Positions 15,740 to 24,798 of a DNA stretch of 64,000 nt are shown here, piece after piece (within the stretch, counting starts at the first letter, position 1; the number at the start of each line of letters is the position of its first letter). The stretch lies in assembly GCA_004431415.1 (NCBI GenBank), contig QPMI01000412.1:62001-126000 (forward strand), given 5' to 3'. The notes below the pieces were generated by a model. The model made no database searches. It was not told where the DNA came from and saw nothing but the letters and a program-made list of their open reading frames with translations. The position numbers and the translations under genes were made by a program. The stretch comes from Cyanophora paradoxa CCMP329. Its lineage: Eukaryota > Plantae > Glaucophyta.

Positions 15740-17492
15740 GTCGAGGCAGCGCCGTGCCTCCGGCTTCCCGCGCCGCCCTCGCCCTCTTGCCCTCCGCACT
15801 CCCCGCTGCGATCGCGATCGGCTCTCATTTCACGAAGGAAACATCGGCTTTAATTTGATAGCTGTTTCAACTTTCAAGGTAGCTCGGCTTCTTTGTCCAC
15901 CTCAGGATTTTGTGTGCTTGCCTAGATTTTCTCTCTATGAAAGTTCCGTTTGCACAGGAGAGACAGTCTCTTCTGCATCTCGGTCTAGAAAACGCTACAC
16001 CTGAAACATGTACAGCTTCCAATTCTCCTCTTCGGGCCGCTGAGGCTCGTATACGTAAAGAATCAGTAGCAGCTGAAATGAAGCTTCGAATTCGAGAACC
16101 CGCTGTCCGCCTGAGGACCGCCTCCCGCGGGCCGCGGCCCGCGGGCCGAACTCGGAAATGCCATGATGAGCTGGAGCCTCGGAGGTTTTCAAAACCAGTT
16201 ATCGATCAACTGCTCGATGGGGCCCGCAGCTGCGGGCCTGCATGCTGCAGTGGCCCTGCACGTTGCCCAAGCTCAGCCCAACTTGCCCTCCAGAAGGGGC
16301 GGTATGCCCTCTGGAAGCGCCGTTTTCGGACTTTTTTTACGTCTTCGGTTTCACATGAGGCTTCTTCGAACTCGAGATCTAGATAAGGTTCCAACTTCAA
16401 CTCTAACTGTACATGTATATACGTACATGGCAGCTACAGAAGTGCGAGTTCGCACAGGCCAGGTGACAACCACTGACAAGGATATCGATCGGACAGGACA
16501 GGCCGCATGCGCAGACCGGGCCGGGGCCGCGCGCTTCGAGCCGGACGGCCGCGCGGCGGGCTCTTTACCCGGCAGAGCCCAAAGCAGAATATATTAATTA
16601 GCTATAGAGTGCGTATACGTACGCGTGCACGTGGGCGCGCAGCTGCGCTTGTACAGTGCGCATGCCGGCGCCGCGCGCAGCGCGCGCGCGCGCGGCGCCG
16701 GCGCGCGGTCGACGTCTGGATCTGCGAGCATGTGCGCATGCGCGTGTACGTGTGCATTCGCACCTGCCGCCTACGTTTTCGATAATTTCTGTGCTGCATG
16801 GCCGTGCGCGCGGCCGCGCGCATTCGATCAAATTCGCTGCGCTGGCCAAACACAAATTTCGATACCCCGGCAGGGACACCCGCTTGTCGATTGTGGGCAG
16901 GCCTGTGTCCGATCTCCGTAAGATCGCTCCGCGTGCATATGCGTACGCATATGCAGCTTGCAGCGATGCGCGTGCACGTGCACCGCCGTCCGGCCGCCGC
17001 ATCGCGCGCGGCGAGCCCGCGCCTGCGAGATCGCCAAGTCGGATCTGCAGCCACTGGGCCGCAGGCCCGAGGCCCACTGGGCCAGTGCGCGCCCGGCCCA
17101 GTTCTGCGGAGCGAGCCGGCGAGCGCGGAACGGCGGCGGTGCGCGCCTGCGCACTGGATCGGAAGCTCCGGCGCGCGGGAGCAGGCGCGCGGCAGGGACA
17201 GAGCACGGACTCTCCGGGAGCAGGCCGGCAGGGGCGGGAACAGCAGGCGATCCACGTGCCTTGAGCGCCCTACGCGTCCGACGCGTACGCCCGCGCATCG
17301 GTAGCGCGATAGAGCGCCCTACGCGTACGCGTCCGACGCCCGCGCATCGATAGCGCGTCGCGCGCGGTGACAAGTGGCGCGCGCCAGGCCTAGGTCGGTT
17401 GTGCACGCAGACTCTGCTTCGTACGCGGGCGAACGCGGCCTGAGGTCGGCGAGGGCGCCTGATTCTCGGGGGAGACATCGACTTCGATATCG

Positions 17493-20400
17493 ATGGCGGG
17501 CGCCGGCGCGCTGGCGGCCGCGGCGGTCGCGGCGCTGGCGGCGTTGGGCGCGTCACGGGCGGCCTGCACGCTGCTCCACGAGTGGGGCCACCTCGCCGCC
17601 GCCCTTCTGCTCGCCTCCCTCCGCGGCTCCTACGCCCTCGCGGGTTTGCGTCCCGTCCTCGAGTTCCCAGCCAGAAGCTCCCGCTTTAATTTCGATGGAT
17701 TTCCCTCCCCTCGCTCCCCATTCCTGATTCGATCCGCCGTCCTCCCTCAGGCGTGCGTGAGGGCGTGCTGACGTCCGGCAACCTGCGGGGAAACCGCGGC
17801 CTCCGCTGGTGGCTCCACCTCGCCTCCCTCGGCGCCTTCGGATCCGTGGGCCTCCCCGCGAAGAAGGGGGAAGAGAAGGGCCCGGAGGCGGCGTGCGCGC
17901 AAGTGGAGGTGCGGCTGCGGGGCGGGCCCCTGGCCCCGGCCGAGCGCGCTGCGGTCGAGCTCGCCGGTCTCGCCGCGAGCCTCGCCGCCCTCGCCGCCGC
18001 CGCCGCCCTCCCCGCGCTCCCCGACTCCCCGCTCCTCGCCGGTGCGCATGCGCGCCCCGCCTCCCTCCTCCGCTCGCGTCTCCGCCCGCGCGCGCGATCG
18101 CGGGCGGGGCGGGGTGGTGCAGCGGTGCGGCTAGGGGCGGTGCTGGGCGCCGGGGAGGTGCTGGCCGGCGCCGTGGCGAGCGACCTCTTCCATGCGCTGC
18201 GGCCGGCCCCGGGCCGCTTCCTCTGCGGAAACTTCGGTGCCCTCGTCCGCCGCTCCCTCGTTCGCTCCCCGCCCCGCCCCCGCCGGCCTCCCCGCCGCCG
18301 CCCGCTGACGTCGGCTTTACTTGTTTCGCAGGACGAGTGGGGATACGTGTAAGAGCCCGGCCCCCGCGCGGCCCGCCGGGGCGCCCGCCCCTCACGGCAG
18401 CCGCGCGCGCAGGCCGAGCTGGCTGTGGGGCATGCTCCAGTACATGATCCAGGCGGGTCCCGTCCCCTCCCGCCCCCGACGCCCCGCCCCGCCCCGCCCC
18501 GCGGCGCCGTGGGAGGCGGGAGAGACCGGGCGTGATGGGGCGGGGCGCGGGCAGGTGACGATGGTGCGGGGCGGGCAGGCCGGCGGCCTCGTCACGTTCG
18601 TCTCCAGCGGTCCCCACGACCTCCGCGGCATCCGGTACCCCCGACCCCTCTCCCTCCCCCCGCCCCGCTCCCCTCCCTTGACGCTGCGCTGCCAGGGAGC
18701 GGGTGGTGAACGGGAAGCGGACGGACCTGGGTGTGGTGCTCGTGCGCGCGATGCGGCGGCTCCTAGCCGTGCACGCCGTGCGGGCGTGCCTGCGGCGGCG
18801 CAACCCGTCCCCCGCCGTCCTCTGCATGGGCCACACGCGCTTCGCCACGTCGAGCTTCCCCGCCGTGGGCGAGACGCACCCGCACCAGTGGCTGCCCCGC
18901 CGCGACGTCGCCCACTGGGCCTTCCACCCCGCCGAGGGCGCCTTCCGCCGCACCGAGCGCTCCGCCGAGGCCCGCCCCGCCCCTCGAACGCCCGGCAGCC
19001 GCCTCTTCGAATTCTGACCCTTCCCTCGCGCGCGCGCAGATCTACATCGTGCGCGCCGGCCGCGGAAATCCAGCGTCGCCCCGCGCTCGCGCCCGCTGAT
19101 CGCGAGGCCCCGGCCCCTCCCCCGCGCAGACGCACAACGGGGACTTCGACTTCTACGACGCCTTCGGCAAGGACCAGACCTACGAGAACGTGCGCGCTTC
19201 CCGTGCCCCGGTCCCGGCTCGGCCTAGGCTCGCGCGCCGGGCTTACTTACGTGCGCCGGCGGCAGATCGGGCTGTGGCTGGAGAAGGTGCACGGGCACGC
19301 GAACCTCGCGAAGGGGGACAGCCCGAAGATCGCCGGCATGGTGGACCTCCTCGCCACCCAGGGCCTCTGGCCCGCCTCCGTCAAGCTCGTCCGCCCCGAC
19401 CCGCCCCGCCCCGCCCTGTCCAGCCCCCTCCAGTTCCTCCTGCTCAGGCGCGCCCCCGCCCCCAGGCGTACTACACGGAGATCTCGTACGGGCTGGACGC
19501 CGTGTTCGAGGGGGGCAAGGTGGCCCGCGACTCGCCCTCGGCCGCCCCGCCCGACTCCGACTTCAAGGCACGCCCACGCCCCGCCCCGCCCCGCTCCGGA
19601 TCCCTCTCCTGAGACCTTTGCAGGCGGTGGCGGACGTCTTTGAGGCACTCTTCGAGAAGCACGCGCGGGCCCTCGCCAAGGGTCCGCGCCCCCTCCCCTC
19701 CGCCCCGTCCCGCCCGGCTGATCGGACGAACGTTCGTCGGGCAGACGCGTACGTGGCGGGACGGCTGGGCCGCTCGCTGCGGGGGCTGGAGGCGGGCGGG
19801 CGGGCGGGCCCCGCCCTCGTCGCCTTCTTGCAGGCGGCGCTGCGCGAGCTGGAGGCGCGCGCCCTCGAGCTGCGCCTCCTGAGCGGCGCCGACGGTGAGG
19901 CGCGGCGGCGCTTCGCGGCGGCGGCCGTGGAGGCCTTCGTCTGCAACGACATCTACACCGCCACGCGCGCCTTCCTCCACCACGCCCGCGGCTCCTTCGG
20001 GTGCGCACGCCGCGCGCAGCGCGCAGCGGCGCGTGTGTATCCTCTTCGATTCGATCCGAGCCGCCCGCGCGCGCGCAGGCTCGTGGTGGGGTCGGCGCTG
20101 GAGGAGGGGGCGGTGGTGGTGAGCGCGCGGGGCCAGCCGATGTCCGTCGCGTACAGCCCGGAGGCCTCGGTCGTGCTCTTCGGGTCGGAGCACGCGGCGC
20201 TGAAGGTGCCGTTCGGGGCGGGCAAGCCCGGGGCGCCGGAGTTCCGGTACGACCTGGACGAGGTGCGGGGCGAGGTCATCGAGGTCCGCCTCGCCGACAT
20301 GCCGCGCCTCCGCCTCCTCCGCCGCCTCTCCACCGCCCTCGCCCTCGACGGCCCAACCGCCCCCGCCGCTGAGGGCAGCCGCCGGGGGCGCCCGGGGCGC

Positions 20401-23400
20401 ACCCTCTCCGCCACGGACCTAGAGGAGGGCCTCGCCGCCGCGCCGGTCGCCGCCCTCGCCGCCCTCCGCAAGACCGGCTCCCTCGCCGGCCTCTCCGCGG
20501 CGGCGGCGGGCAAGCTGAAGGCGGCCGGGGGCGGGGGTGCCTCGGGCTCGTCGCTAGAGCCTGAGAGCGGGACGGAGCGCTGGGTGGAGCTCGAGGACGG
20601 CGACGCGACCTCCCTCGCCCACTCCGCCTACACCGCGTGCGCCCCCCTTTCTCAGCTTCCGCCCGCCCCTTTCTAAGCTTCCCTCCCAGGGCCTCCAAGC
20701 TCTCGCGGGCGGCGAGCGTTCACGTGGTGCCCAAGGGCGCGGGGGCGGCCGGGGGCGGCGGCGGCGGCGGAGGCGAGTGGGAGTTCTGCCGGGCGCGGGT
20801 GACGGGGGGCGGCTTCCCCGTGGTGCAGCCGAGCGGGGCGGCGATGCACCTGGGCGGGGACCTCTACATGCGGCACTACGCCCTCGCCACCGCCCGCGAG
20901 CTCCGCGGCCTCCCCGAGCTCCAGGTCCGTCTCGAAGCTAAGGACTCTGGCTTGCGGGCTCTGACCCGCGGCCGCGCCGCAGGCGACGCCGCGCTTCATC
21001 GACCTGCGCGGCAACGCGTACATCTCGCCGCTGCCGCCGCCGCCGCGGCCCGGGGCGGACATCGTGGGGGAGGACATCGCGGACATCGCCCGCGTGCTGA
21101 AGGCGATCCGCCTCGACTGGGCGGACGCCGGGGGGCACAACCGCCTCTCGGCCGCCAAGTTCGCCGAGCTGCTCCTCCGCCGCGCCCGCGAGCGGCGGGC
21201 CGGCGACGCCGCCAACAAGGTCGACCTCGTGGTCACTGTGCGCCGGCCGGGCCGGGCCGGGCCCCCCGGGCCCCTCGCCCCTGCGCCGCCGCCGCCCGCT
21301 GCGCGCCTCTCACGTCGGTGCGCGCAGGGGTGCGAGATCTCGCTGTGGATCGCGGAGAACTGGGTCTCCGACCTCAAGAAGTGCATGCCGAGCCTCACCG
21401 TCCTCGCCATCAGCGCCAACAAGGCCCGCCCCGCCCCGCCCCGCCCCGCCCCGCCCCACCCCGAGCCCCTCCATTTGGCTAAGGCGGCGGCTCCTGGCCC
21501 GGGCAGATCATCGACGTGTACGGGAGCAAGCGCGGGGAGAAGGCGGTGGCGGGGTCCGCCTTCTCGCGGCGGACGGCGGACCTCTCGGGGGCGGTGGGCC
21601 TCGCCGTGAGCCACAGCGGCAACACCTTCGCGACGACGCAGGCAACGCTGCTGCTGAAGGGCCTCACCGCCGGCCGCACCTTCTGCCTCGTCCGCAACAC
21701 GGACACCCTCATGTCCAGCATCGTGGGGCAGCGCCTGGACCGGAGCGCGCCGCGGTGCCCGTTCGTCTTCACGAACGGGGCCGGCTGGCGCCCCGCGGAG
21801 CCGAGCAGCGTGGCGGCCGCCGCCCTCCACCAGACCCTCACCGAGCTCCTCCTCTGCCTCGTCCGCCCCGCCCCGCCCCGCCCGCGCCGGCCCCTCTTCA
21901 GAGCTTGCCCGCTGATCCCCCGCCCTTCCCGCGCAGGTCTTCACGTTCGACAGCCTCTCCATCCACGAGCGGCCCTTCGGCATCGTGTGCGCGCACGCCT
22001 GCCGCCGCGGCCCGCCGCCCCGTGAATCCTGATCATAGCCCGCTGCTGCAGGACGAGCCCGACGGACGCGCACGCGCTGGACTCGCTGGCGCACACGACC
22101 GTCGAGAAGCACGTGCCCCTCATCACGGGCCGCACCGCCGCCGGCGCCCCCGCCACCGAGCCGGACCCCGAGCACCCGGCCCGCACGCGGCCCTCGGCGT
22201 ACCACGCGAAGCTGGTGGAGGCGGGGCGCCGCTGGGGCATGCACGTCATCGAGGCGCCCCTCGTCTGGGCCCTCGCCTCCCTCTACGTCTGGCTCTCCGT
22301 CTTCTTCGGCGTCTCCCTCTTCCGCGTCCTCCTCTCCGGCTACGACCACTGCTCCGGCGGCATCTGCGCCCCGGGCTACGGTCCGCCCCGCCCCGCCTCC
22401 CGCACATCTCTCTGCTTTCCCACTCCCCACTCCTCCGCAGGGCTCGACGGGCGCTACCAGTGGCTGCACCGCTTCCTGGACAGCTGGCTCTACGTCTGGT
22501 GCGTCCTGGCCTTCACACTCCTGCTCCGCCTCGTGCAGCGCCGCCCGCTCCTCGCCCGCCTCGGCCGCCGCACCGTCGTCGTCGGTGCGCGGCCAGCCGA
22601 GCCCAGCCCAGCCCAGCCTAGCCTGGCCTGAGCGGGGCCGGGCGGCAGGGGACGCGCCCTACGTGCACCAGTGCCTGGAGGCCTTCCTCTCCAAGCTCTT
22701 CGCCCTCTCCTACAGGTCCGCAAGCCCTCGGGCTCGGCCTCTCCTACAGGGATCGGCCCGACTGGCGGGGGGCGGGGCGGGGCGGGGCAGCATCGCGTCG
22801 GTGGACGTGCACGGGGGCAGCCCGGCGGACCACCTCGTGCACCGCTTCACCCACCGCGTGGCCCGCGGCGTCCTCCTCGCCGTCGGGCGCCCCGACGGCC
22901 GCGTGTGCGCCCTCACCAAGGCCGAGTCCTCCACCATGCTCTCCATCTGCCAGGCGAAGGTCCGATCCGCCCGCCCCCGCCCCCTCCCCCGCCCCCTTCT
23001 CCGAGGCCAGCTATCTGTCCCTGCCCCCACCCCCACCCCCGCCCCCGCTCCCGCCGCCTCCCTTCGTCTTGAGCGGGCGCGCTGACCGGTCCTTCTCCCC
23101 GCAGAGCATCCAGAACCTGGGCCGCTCCGGTGGCCCCGAGCTCGTCACTGTGCGTCCTCCTTTTTAAATCGGGCTCTAAATCTGAGGCCGGCGCTGACGG
23201 TGCGGGGCCGGGGGCAGATCGGGCACAACCCGTGGACGCACGAGCAGATGATCGACACGCGGATCGTGCTGCCGAGCGAGCGGGGCCAGTTCCTCTGCGA
23301 GGCCGTCTCGGGCCTCAAGAGCTACTACCGGCCCCGCCAGCGCGCCCCCTCCATCGTCGCCAGCCTCGGGAGCCTCGCGAAGCGGGCCGGCCTCTCCAAC

Positions 23401-24798
23401 CGCGGCGTGCGGCCGGGGCGGGGCCAGGACGAGTCGGTGCACCTCGGGTTCAGCCCCGGGGAGATCATGTCGGCGGGGGCGGCGGCGGTGGCGGCCAAGG
23501 CGGAGATGTCGCGCCTCGAGCTGCTCGTCATGAAGCACCAGTCGAACATCATCGGCGCCGAGTCCATCATCTACTCCAAGGCCCTCGCCCTCTCCAAGCG
23601 CCGCGGCTCCGGATCCGGCGCCCGCCGCGGCTCCGGCGGGCCCGCCCCGCCCCCGGCGCCGGCCCCCACGCGGGCGCAGGCGCCGGCGCCGGCGAGCCCC
23701 GCGCTCAAGGCGACGCCGGTGCACATGAAGACGATCTCCGTGCACCTCGAGGGACCGGCTTCGCTCTGGGCGATCGCGAGCTCGCCGGCGGGCCCGCCGC
23801 CTGCTGCCCGCCGCCGCCGGCCAAGGTGGACCCGCTGCGGGTGACGCTGAGCAGCCCGCGCGGGCCGGGGCCCGGGGCGGCGAGGGCGGCTCCACCCCGC
23901 GGGCCCGCGCCGGCCTGGCGGAGGAGGCGGGCCCGTTCCCCGCCGCGGCCCGCGCCCGCCGAGCCGCCTCGGCGCCTCGGGCTCGGCTCGGGCGGGCCTG
24001 CGGCGCTTCCGGGCGGCGGCGGAGCGGGTGCTGGCGGAGCAGGTGCGGCCTCGGCTGGCGGCGGGGCGGCGGGCGGCGGCGGCGGAGGGCCCCTCCCTGG
24101 GCCGCTTTCAGGCCCTCGTCATGAAGCTCGTCCACGAGCGCCGCGGTGCGCGCGCTCTCGATCGCTTAGACTCCAAAACTTCAATTTATACTCCAAAAAC
24201 TTCAGTTTAGACTCCGAAAGCGGGCCCCAAAGTCTGACTGGGCGCGGCGGGCTGGGCAGCGGTGATATCGCCGCACAGCCGGGCGACGCAGCACACGTTC
24301 AGCGACCTCTCGCTCCCCGTGCAGGCCGCCCTCGAGGCCCAGCAGCCCCTCGAGGAGCTCGCCGAGTCCCGCCTCTTCTCCATGGAGCGGTCCGCACCCC
24401 CCTCGTTCCTAAGCTTGAGCTCGTGATCATGATCGAACCCTAGCTATCCTTCAGCTTACTAAGTTAGTTAAAAACAATGCTCAGCTCAGCTCAATTTATC
24501 CGATCTCGTTCTGAGGGCGCGGGGTCCGGGGCGCAGGATGGTGGCGTTCATGGTGATGTTCCACGCGATGGCGGCCCGCGTCGCCGCCTTCCCCCTCCTC
24601 GGCTTCGACCTGGCCCGCTCCCAGTCCTCCCTCCGCGTCGCCTCCACCGCCGCCCCCGCCTCGGGCGCCGAGATCGCCCAGGCCCTCGCCGCCATGGCCG
24701 ACCGCGCCCAGCGCGCCGCCGCCGAGGCCGAGCGCCGCGGCGCCCCCGCCGCCGGCATCTCTATGGAGCAGGCCCGCCGCCGCCTCTCCTTCGGCTGA
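17493..24798 (+). CDS. Divergent GlmS/GFAT-like protein: M50-like HEWGH membrane domain, class II (Ntn) glutamine amidotransferase, SIS, transmembrane insert, second SIS-like domain
   Basis: HEWGH (17577-17591); CGNFG (from 18224); RGGQAGG; GHTRFATSS; ETHPH; HNGD; GDSPK; GCEISLW; VSHSGNTFAT; GAGWRPAEPSS. These match in order the GlmS motifs CGIVG, RGYDSAG, HTRWATHG, NAHPH, HNG, TDTE, CGTS, SQSGET and AGxEIGVAS. Confidence 0.8.

Follow-up and report, generated by a model that had tools for sequence, protein, structure and literature searches.

A site-2-protease-like module directly ahead of the internal catalytic cysteine of a GlmS-like amidotransferase in Cyanophora paradoxa

The class II amidotransferases work with a cysteine, Cys1, whose amino group is free, and in some of them, such as PurF of B. 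subtilis, animal PPAT and glutamate synthase, this residue is neither the first nor the second of the translation product but is exposed by removal of a leader. These leaders are either short, about 11-40 residues, or transit peptides, they are without an enzyme fold, and in PurF and glutamate synthase the enzyme itself is credited with removing the short propeptide, in keeping with the habit of Ntn hydrolases, which usually self-process. The protein described here, from the glaucophyte Cyanophora paradoxa CCMP329, is like these propeptide-bearing enzymes in that its cysteine is internal in the translation product, but its leader is a conserved metalloprotease-like membrane domain, and the leader exceeds 1000 residues in some bacterial relatives.

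The nearest described counterparts of the two halves are well known. With M50 proteases (RseP, SpoIVFB, the S2P of M. jannaschii and small M50B-like proteins) the N-terminal module shares the succession of a membrane helix with HExxH, a loop segment, a helix of the AG(P) type and, on a later helix, an Asp ligand. It differs from them in being minimal (about 130-180 residues, with neither a PDZ nor a CBS domain), in carrying its Asp in S-D-L rather than in N-x-x-P-x-x-x-L-D-G, in scoring below Pfam thresholds, and in cyanobacteria in having its Glu outside the HExxH motif; its presumed substrate also differs, as this would be its own chain, 12-31 residues downstream, and not a separate membrane protein. 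For the glutaminase domain the best fold and profile match is GlmS/GFAT (1xff and human GFAT1), and here too an SIS-like region follows, although the present family departs from GlmS/GFAT in its large inserts, its internal Cys, its long additional C-terminal regions and a membrane hairpin within the sugar-binding half. Both halves are thus textbook enzyme types, and it is their strict pairing that seems to be undescribed: full-text searching for the fusion or its motif returned no relevant paper, no curated family describing the fusion was found, and no NCBIfam model fits these proteins, which are named 'hypothetical' or 'GATase type-2 domain-containing'.

Gene structure and transcript

The gene lies on contig QPMI01000412.1, and all coordinates (Table 1) are those of the window, the 64,000-nt stretch of DNA that was analysed. 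In the database gene model P0001, whose N-terminus is identical to that read from the window, a three-helix M50-like membrane module comes first, then the class II amidotransferase, then an SIS-like region that contains a membrane hairpin, and finally conserved C-terminal sequence. Intron 1 divides the conserved module, leaving HExxH on exon 1 and the loop motif N-x-L-G-N on exon 2, and only splicing reunites the two.

Table 1. Positions in the window of the gene, its exons and introns, and the motifs discussed
Feature	Position	Strand	Content or basis
Whole gene	17493..24798	+	About 26 exons; annotated product 1711 aa (P0001)
In-frame TGA	about 17460		Upstream of the exon 1 start codon
Exon 1	17493..17643	+	Start codon and membrane helix A with H29, E30, H33; RNA contig X1 record 1 spans 17497-17642
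HEWGH, residues 29-33	17577-17591	+	Exon 1; putative metal-site codons H29 17577-79, E30 17580-82, H33 17589-91
Intron 1 (GT-AG)	17644..17750	+	RNA contigs and P0001 mapping
Exon 2	17751..18041	+	Basic (cytosolic) loop with N61-L-R-G64, then membrane helix B with AG motif; RNA contig X2 record 8 starts at 17947
N61-L-R-G64	17780-17791	+	G64 column is Glu in HGxxH proteins
VELAGLAAS (AG motif)		+	G123 at 17966-17968
Exon 3	18123..18259	+	Membrane helix C with D168, 13-residue linker, Cys182 of CGNFG, first amidotransferase strand
AVASDL		+	D168 at 18182-18184; likely third metal ligand
CGNFG	18224-18238	+	Cys182 codon 18224-18226
Exon 4	18332..18348	+	17-nt microexon (DEWGY); also in P0001
Exon 5	18413..18452	+	40 nt; GC donor at end
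In-frame GC-AG intron	18453..18554	+	Retained in P0001 as residues 213-246; spliced out in RNA (X2 record 8)
Exon 6	18555..18634	+	Invariant RG-x-Q-x-x-G motif; Arg at 18567-69
Exon 7	18696..18969	+	Class II glutaminase-site motifs K-R, GH-x-R-x-x-T and HPH, all invariant; RNA cover X1 record 2 (18711-18969) and X2 record 8 (up to 18927)
Remaining amidotransferase exons	19041..20637	+	P0001 mapping, RNA contigs over 20078-20547, invariant columns, GlmS fold match
Probable microexon, 9 nt	19041-19049	+	P0001 mapping
Exon with HNGD	19130-19189	+	P0001 mapping
Exon with DS	19266-19388	+	P0001 mapping
Further exons	19466-19570, 19624-19680, 19745-20001, 20080-20637	+	Starts 19624 and 19745 read from splice sites

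An earlier note, made from the DNA letters, had placed HEWGH, a hydrophobic stretch ending in GAVASDL, and CGNFG with the class II glutaminase motifs in one transcript. All of these were found in the spliced plus-strand product, with RG, GHTRFATSS, ETHPH, HNGD and DS encoded in exons downstream of CGNFG, and an in-frame RNA contig joins with P0001 in placing them on a single transcript: the HEWGH module and the amidotransferase are one spliced reading frame. The contig concerned, X2 record 8, joins 17947-18040, 18122-18260, 53 unplaced letters, 18552-18633 and 18695-18927, and the 17 + 40 nt of exons 4 and 5 account for the unplaced letters together with the fuzzy ends of the record; the DNA run X8 follows the genome collinearly, with the introns present. 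The segment of P0001 that corresponds to the retained GC-AG intron is without any counterpart in homologues and has a pLDDT below 50 (residues 214-249) in the AF2 model. Exon 7 extends in RNA to a GC donor, past the annotated splice at 18906.

If the gene model were an artefact, the HEWGH exons would be a separate small gene and the amidotransferase would start elsewhere. What lends this some room is the joining of exon 1 to exon 2, the basis of which is one contig and depth arithmetic: the donor of exon 1 (17642/3) is precisely where X1 record 1 ends, and the remaining 121 letters of the record explain the depth of the next bin. However, the spliced RNA contig links exon 2 to exons 3-7 in frame, the conserved module covers exons 1-3, the same fused layout is seen in intron-free bacterial genes, and there is no Met among residues 2-181. 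We regard an artefact of this kind as hardly credible.

The two halves of the protein

By sequence and by modelling, the downstream domain was confirmed as a class II (Ntn) amidotransferase, the assignment made in the earlier note; it is divergent and GlmS/GFAT-like, and it has all of the catalytic residues: the Cys, the Arg of RG, the Arg and Thr of GH-x-R-x-x-T, the Asn-Gly of HNG that form the oxyanion hole, and the Asp of DS are each invariant in 30 members. The modelled domain, mostly at pLDDT >85 in the AF2 prediction, has the four-layer alpha-beta-beta-alpha Ntn fold with Cys182 directly ahead of the strand formed by residues 183-190, and a Foldseek search with it returned GlmS (1xff, E 7e-6, prob 1.0, TM by target 0.62-0.67) and then GFAT1, PurF and EgtC. 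Pfam gathering scores are not reached, either by GATase_6 (17.0 bits, cut-off 27) or by GATase_2 (12.2 bits, cut-off 19.9), which marks a divergent branch, and the NCBIfam models TIGR01135 and NF001484 give 19-33 bits against cut-offs of 381-418. On these profile scores the domain is GlmS-like, but it is not GlmS.

The proposal in the earlier note that the N-terminus is an M50/S2P-like module is supported by five independent tests, each of which is weak on its own and falls short of the usual mark of significance. A profile search of solved structures gave five matches, four of them RseP or MjS2P, with HExxH and AG(P) aligned. In a structure search by a method other than Foldseek, over 48,161 chains, all four solved S2P types were in the top 15 and had the longest aligned stretches there, 114-119 residues, at Z 5.2-6.0 and so all below 8 (7w6z, Z 6.0 over 118 residues; 8vjl, 5.9 over 114; 9j83, 5.4 over 115; 3b4r, 5.2 over 119). 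M50/S2P clusters filled seven of ten rows in an ESM Atlas structure search (TM 0.43-0.54); M50 proteins are the nearest folds among both solved and predicted structures, and the language-model neighbours of the module were M50 without exception. Pfam Peptidase_M50 matches 9 of 29 members at E 0.006-1, and M50B matches one at 4e-5, with M50 scores of at most 13.9 bits in the ten members rescanned, against a gathering score of 27.2. P0001 itself does not match PF02163 or PF13398, its single exons, too short and too divergent, match nothing in Pfam, and Foldseek of the module model against the PDB gave no match at E <= 0.001. Finally, hhalign against E. coli RseP, at a probability of 15%, places HExxH, the P-x-G-G segment and AGP in matching order, and the motif order of M50 is likewise matched by the module alignments.

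In the AF2 model of the module a helix spanning residues 4-43 (pLDDT 88-94) holds H29-E30-x-x-H33, and D168 lies at the end of the helix 144-169, in an S-D-L rather than the canonical L-D-G. The module-only model pairs residues 179-181 as a strand with 103-105, much as an S2P might dock its substrate; the pairing is absent from the 625-residue model, in which the linker has a pLDDT below 50, and we place no weight on it. A complex prediction of the module (residues 1-169, with Zn) against residues 170-212 scored 0.01, which is not evidence either way.

Conservation of the module ahead of the cysteine

Hundreds of proteins of cyanobacteria, other bacteria and algae have the fused layout, with family members in Nostoc, Leptolyngbya and Chroococcidiopsis, and the similar CGNFG proteins that the earlier note had suggested for cyanobacteria number at least 250 clusters. 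We counted residues in 150 homologous modules, of which 123 are cyanobacterial and HGxxH. H29, H33 and C182 are kept in all 150 and D168 in 149, and to judge from the alignments the co-occurrence of the module motifs with the Cys is far beyond chance. The expectation that HExxH itself would be co-conserved with an internal CGNxG therefore held for the His-His-Asp triad and failed for the Glu, which is kept in 27 modules; in the other 123, the cyanobacterial ones, it is a Gly, and a second site, some 25 residues further along, has a Glu instead. The pairs at positions 30 and 64 are (G,E) in 123, (E, non-acidic) in 23, (E,E) in three and (E,D) in one, and (G, non-E) does not occur. Two HE revertants are nested in the HG clade, one of them without the second-site Glu; the relocation amounts to only 2-3 independent events, and a sign test of the Glu/Gly swap on independent pairs is not significant.

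These counts bear on whether the module cuts at all. It might instead bind metal as a sensor or a latch on the Cys region, with the thiol for example as fourth ligand, or the protein might never be processed and its amidotransferase-like domain be non-catalytic or unusual. The invariance of His-His-Asp even where the HExxH Glu is Gly would suit such a role, as would the one cyanobacterial member with a C-terminal cation-diffusion-facilitator part. Yet a Glu, and hence an acidic residue, is present at one of the two sites in 150/150 modules, which speaks for catalysis rather than mere binding, and the glutaminase residues are all invariant, which implies selection for a working enzyme, and this needs a free Cys1. 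We consider either of these readings improbable.

The distance to the cysteine is also constrained. The earlier note had put the Cys shortly after the Asp of SDL, and the two do adjoin, but at 14 residues rather than about 12. The same spacing of 14 is found in 121 of the 123 cyanobacterial proteins, it is 12-31 in 26 of the remaining 27, and two positions ahead of the Cys stands a Phe, Tyr or Leu in 149/150. In giant bacterial forms the Cys lies some 800-1240 residues into the chain and is still immediately behind the module; Pfam gives only faint Tiki/ChaN-type hints for these long N-terminal parts. Relatives without the module start with Met-Cys and keep the downstream membrane hairpin, and thus the module is not merely an anchor. 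No stand-alone module was found at E <= 0.01 with the module profile among proteins of 107-340 aa, a search limited by the word index, and a homologue search with residues 1-212 of P0001 returned only the query, its alanine-rich sequence defeating that index. The neighbourhoods of cyanobacterial and other bacterial members have no shared partner genes.

How Cys182 might be freed

Met1 is the only Met ahead of Cys182, so that no alternative start would expose the Cys and only a cut in the chain could free it. Synthesis as an inactive zymogen, activated by such a cut, is probable, given that enzymes of class II work through the free amino group of their Cys1. The best reading of the alignments and models, to which we give slightly less than an even chance, is that the module cleaves ahead of Cys182, either in the chain to which it belongs or in a partner subunit. 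Its active site would lie at the cytosolic face of the membrane, and cleavage of the bond before Cys182 would create the N-terminal nucleophile. Since the enzyme would stay in the membrane through its own downstream hairpin, the cut would mature it rather than release it, and any gating by a membrane signal, as proposed in the earlier note, would be speculative. In its fuller form, which we put forward still more tentatively, the module would be a metalloprotease of the intramembrane type, dedicated to this task and probably limited to a single turnover, that cleaves its own polypeptide 12-31 residues beyond its Asp ligand, the catalytic Glu of the cyanobacterial proteins having moved off the HExxH helix into the loop that comes after it.

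It may be instead that the Ntn domain removes the module itself, through an N-to-S acyl shift at Cys182, and that the M50-like module, though a genuine protease or hydrolase, has some other job, for example on another membrane substrate or in delivery or anchoring of the precursor. Self-processing is the established rule for Ntn hydrolases, the members without a module show that the enzyme needs none in principle, cutting in cis is not known for any M50 protease, and the linker is poorly modelled. But the module was found, within the reach of the profile search, only directly ahead of this Cys and at a near-fixed distance, for which there would be no need if its job had nothing to do with the Cys, and anchoring is already supplied downstream. 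On balance we think self-processing rather unlikely, though it is the leading rival.

Should the module make the cut, this would be a new route to the activation of Ntn enzymes, and the family would provide two firsts: an M50-type enzyme that acts in cis, and an Ntn amidotransferase that owes its activation to a protease of its own and not to self-processing or loss of the Met. Intramembrane metalloproteases, whose handling of substrates is hard to study, would gain a model substrate that is minimal and self-contained, and there would be a natural case of a catalytic residue shifting within an active site. As the family is present in culturable cyanobacterial genera, the idea is directly testable, and if true it would point to a step in the amino-sugar or related nitrogen chemistry of algae and cyanobacteria that is regulated and bound to the membrane.

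The gene and its transcript

The DNA of the window is eukaryotic and very GC-rich, with short introns. An ATG at 17493 on the forward strand, with an in-frame stop upstream, opens a hydrophobic exon in which HEWGH forms residues 29-33, and exons 1-7 were called from splice sites and reading frames.

Window coordinates of exons 1-7 of the gene
Feature	Position	Strand	Basis or remark
exon 1	17493-17643	+	splice sites/frame
exon 2	17751-18041	+	splice sites/frame
exon 3	18123-18259	+	holds CGNFG; Cys codon 18224-26 = residue 182
exon 4	18332-18348	+	17 nt
exon 5	18413-18452	+	GC donor
exon 6	18555-18634	+	splice sites/frame
exon 7	18696-18969	+	splice sites/frame

The stop-free frame 19624-20673, used as query against the full library, returned P0001, the database model of this gene (EukProt, tig00020560_g11082.t1, 1711 aa; its residue numbers are used here), which maps to 17493-24795. 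Contigs from the organism's RNA-type runs are free of the introns, whereas a DNA run remains collinear with the genomic sequence. One RNA contig (X2 record 8) joins 17947-18040, 18122-18260, 53 unplaced letters, 18552-18633 and 18695-18927, and the 17-nt and 40-nt exons explain the unplaced letters, given ends that fit both sides. Another (X1 record 1) spans 17497-17642 and ends at the exon 1 donor; placing its remaining 121 letters (depth 4.3) on exon 2 accounts for the mean depth of 2.64 in the next bin. That the HEWGH exon and the internal CGNFG belong to one gene, as the earlier note had read them, is borne out by the N-terminus of P0001, identical to exons 1-4 as read here, and by the RNA contig joining exons 2-7; that the arrangement is a gene-model artefact is barely credible. 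P0001 does differ from the RNA at two places: it reads through the GC-AG intron at 18453-18554, which is in frame and becomes residues 213-246 (34 residues, pLDDT <50 in the model), a stretch that homologues lack, and it splices at 18906 whereas the RNA contigs continue to 18969 (63 coding bases, 18907-18969). Both differences lie outside the module, that is, the N-terminal three-helix part before Cys182, and of the two forms the one backed by RNA agrees more closely with the family consensus.

At least two introns of the gene have GC donors (after 18452 and after 18969), many are filled with CCCCGCCCCG-type repeats, and very small exons occur: exon 4, which fits the unplaced letters of the X2 contig, and, at 19041-19049, a probable 9-nt exon. 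Just upstream, at 17265-17345, lie two near-identical copies of a unit of ~35-40 nt that holds 'gccctacgcgt', 'ccgacgc' and 'cccgcgcatcg-tagcgcg' and is rich in ACGCGT-type palindromes. The rest of the gene (21060-24798) encodes a SIS-like region with hydrophobic hairpin segments (P0001 ~1132-1150 and beyond), and a conserved C-terminal block (~1610-1680) is common to bacterial and algal relatives.

Identity of the two domains

The second domain is a class II amidotransferase, which we regard as settled. Its Pfam and NCBIfam matches, to GATase and GlmS models, are all sub-threshold; the catalytic residues (Cys, RG, GH-x-R-x-x-T, HPH, HNGD and DS) are all conserved across 30 aligned domains, and the best matches of the profile of these domains in the PDB are to human GFAT1 (E 0.005). 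The AF2 model of residues 1-625 (pLDDT 80.5) has as its first match the glutaminase domain of GlmS (1xff, E 7e-6, prob 1.0), followed by GFAT1, PurF and EgtC, and in it Cys182 immediately precedes the first strand, 183-190. The domain is GlmS-like, yet not GlmS.

The tests of M50 likeness in the module are individually weak and all point in the same direction. When a profile of 29 modules was run against all PDB sequences with a limit of E 10, RseP or M. jannaschii S2P made up four of the five matches (E 0.12-1.8), and in these HExxH and the AG(P) helix line up. Among single members, Pfam Peptidase_M50 was matched by 9 of 29 (best E 0.006), M50B by one (4e-5) and DUF3267, 'putative zincin peptidase', by one, every rescanned score being under the gathering score. 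By hhalign the HExxH, the P-x-G-G segment and the AGP occur in the same order as in E. coli RseP, at a probability of 15%. The AF2 model of residues 1-194 (pLDDT 79.6, pTM 0.79) has three long helices; Foldseek found nothing with it, and when an exhaustive aligner ranked 48,161 chains, the four solved S2P types all came within the top 15 (Z 6.0 for 7w6z, 5.9 for 8vjl, 5.4 for 9j83 and 5.2 for 3b4r), with the longest aligned stretches within that top 15 (114-119 residues). M50/S2P clusters fill 7 of 10 rows of an ESM Atlas structure search (TM 0.43-0.54), and the nearest language-model neighbours, a lead only, are all M50 clusters (0.79-0.81). The earlier proposal of a site-2-protease-like N-terminus is supported to this extent, and the module is filed as M50-like at superfamily level, outside any curated M50 family.

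The family and its conserved residues

Relatives of P0001 are ~1000-2900 aa long, and all carry CGN-x-G ~25-35 residues ahead of T-x-x-R-G-x-Q-x-G-G. Three N-terminal forms were seen: a Met-Cys start (in the DNA of P0148 an in-frame stop lies upstream and the sole Met is at -17 or -1); the module, as ~100-180 residues in front of the Cys; and giant bacterial proteins with the same module and the Cys ~800-1240 residues inside. At least 250 more proteins came up when a cyanobacterial member served as query; their sources include Stanieria, Chroococcidiopsis, Nostoc, Pleurocapsa, Leptolyngbya and Chamaesiphon, and they go by the names 'hypothetical' or 'glutamine amidotransferase type-2 domain-containing'.

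The bacterial metagenome proteins P0003, P0005, P0007, P0008, P0009, P0022, P0099 and P0121 (loci L003, L004; 2250-2890 aa) have the module and the Cys ~960-1240 residues inside. The N-terminal parts of these proteins matched no Pfam family beyond faint hints of Tiki/ChaN (Cofac_haem_bdg) in two of them, P0008 and P0121; P0002, of 1876 aa and with its Cys at 617, gave the same hint. Of the cyanobacterial P0175, P0182 and P0212, two end in WD40-type repeats and one in a cation-diffusion-facilitator part (PF01545/PF16916); these ends could be genuine fusions, or else joins made during assembly or gene calling. Residues 1113-1176 of the family member P0057 (Logan assembly), in its C-terminal part, match the calcium-binding XopAW NCBIfam model (E 2.6e-7), possibly as an EF-hand-like insert.

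Among 29 aligned modules, H29, H33, C182, G183, N184 and G186 never vary and 28 keep D168; in 150, both histidines and C182 are kept throughout, D168 in 149 (the remaining one has Glu), and the G123 column holds Gly, Ala or Ser. The expectation that HExxH would be co-conserved is upheld for the histidines and fails for the Glu, present in only 27 of 150, the 123 cyanobacterial modules reading HGxxH. All 123 have a Glu at the column of G64, in a motif N-I-L-E-x-R ~25 residues past the first His, a position mostly occupied by Gly, Ala or another residue in HExxH modules. The E30 and G64 columns pair as (G,E) in 123 modules, (E, non-acidic) in 23, (E,E) in three, (E,D) in one and (G, non-E) in none. 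On a tree of the amidotransferase domain alone, the HExxH proteins P0226 and P0245 nest within the HG clade, and P0226 has lost the second-site Glu. Strict retention of that Glu argues that an acidic catalytic group would be required, despite a sign test on the Glu/Gly swap that is not significant, independent events being few. Asp and Cys are 14 residues apart in 121 of 123 cyanobacterial proteins and 12-31 apart in 26 of 27 others; two positions before the Cys stands Phe, Tyr or Leu (149/150), and the position immediately before it is variable.

Proposed exposure of the catalytic cysteine

Class II amidotransferases work through the free amino group of Cys1, so the primary product should lack activity as long as the bond preceding Cys182 is intact. 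Since P0001 has no Met in residues 2-181, Cys182 is not exposable by an alternative start. In the loop joining helices A and B there are 10 Lys/Arg and 5 Asp/Glu, in the B-C loop no Lys/Arg, and in the post-C linker 2 Arg. By the positive-inside rule these charges would put HExxH, D168, the position-64 loop and the Cys182 linker on the cytosolic face, the side on which the amidotransferase has to lie.

It is possible, and we propose it tentatively as the best reading, that the module itself makes the cut. Its occurrence only directly before this Cys, at near-fixed distance, favours this, as does the strong selection for a complete metal site and an acidic residue; nor does anchoring call for it, since the downstream hairpin is retained in members that lack the module. 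The main rival, Ntn self-processing with the module serving another role, is somewhat less likely, and a metal latch that does not cut, or a protein left unprocessed, is less likely still. The cut would leave the enzyme bound to the membrane, with no release, and the gating by a membrane signal suggested in the earlier note therefore stays speculation. The one hint towards it comes from the giant bacterial P0005, in which a first membrane segment (11-29) is followed by ~830 residues before the module, a region that may be extracytoplasmic.

No description of a fusion of this module with an amidotransferase was found in a literature search, and no NCBIfam model fits. The protein combines two known kinds of domain in a new architecture, and its mechanism of activation is possibly new as well.
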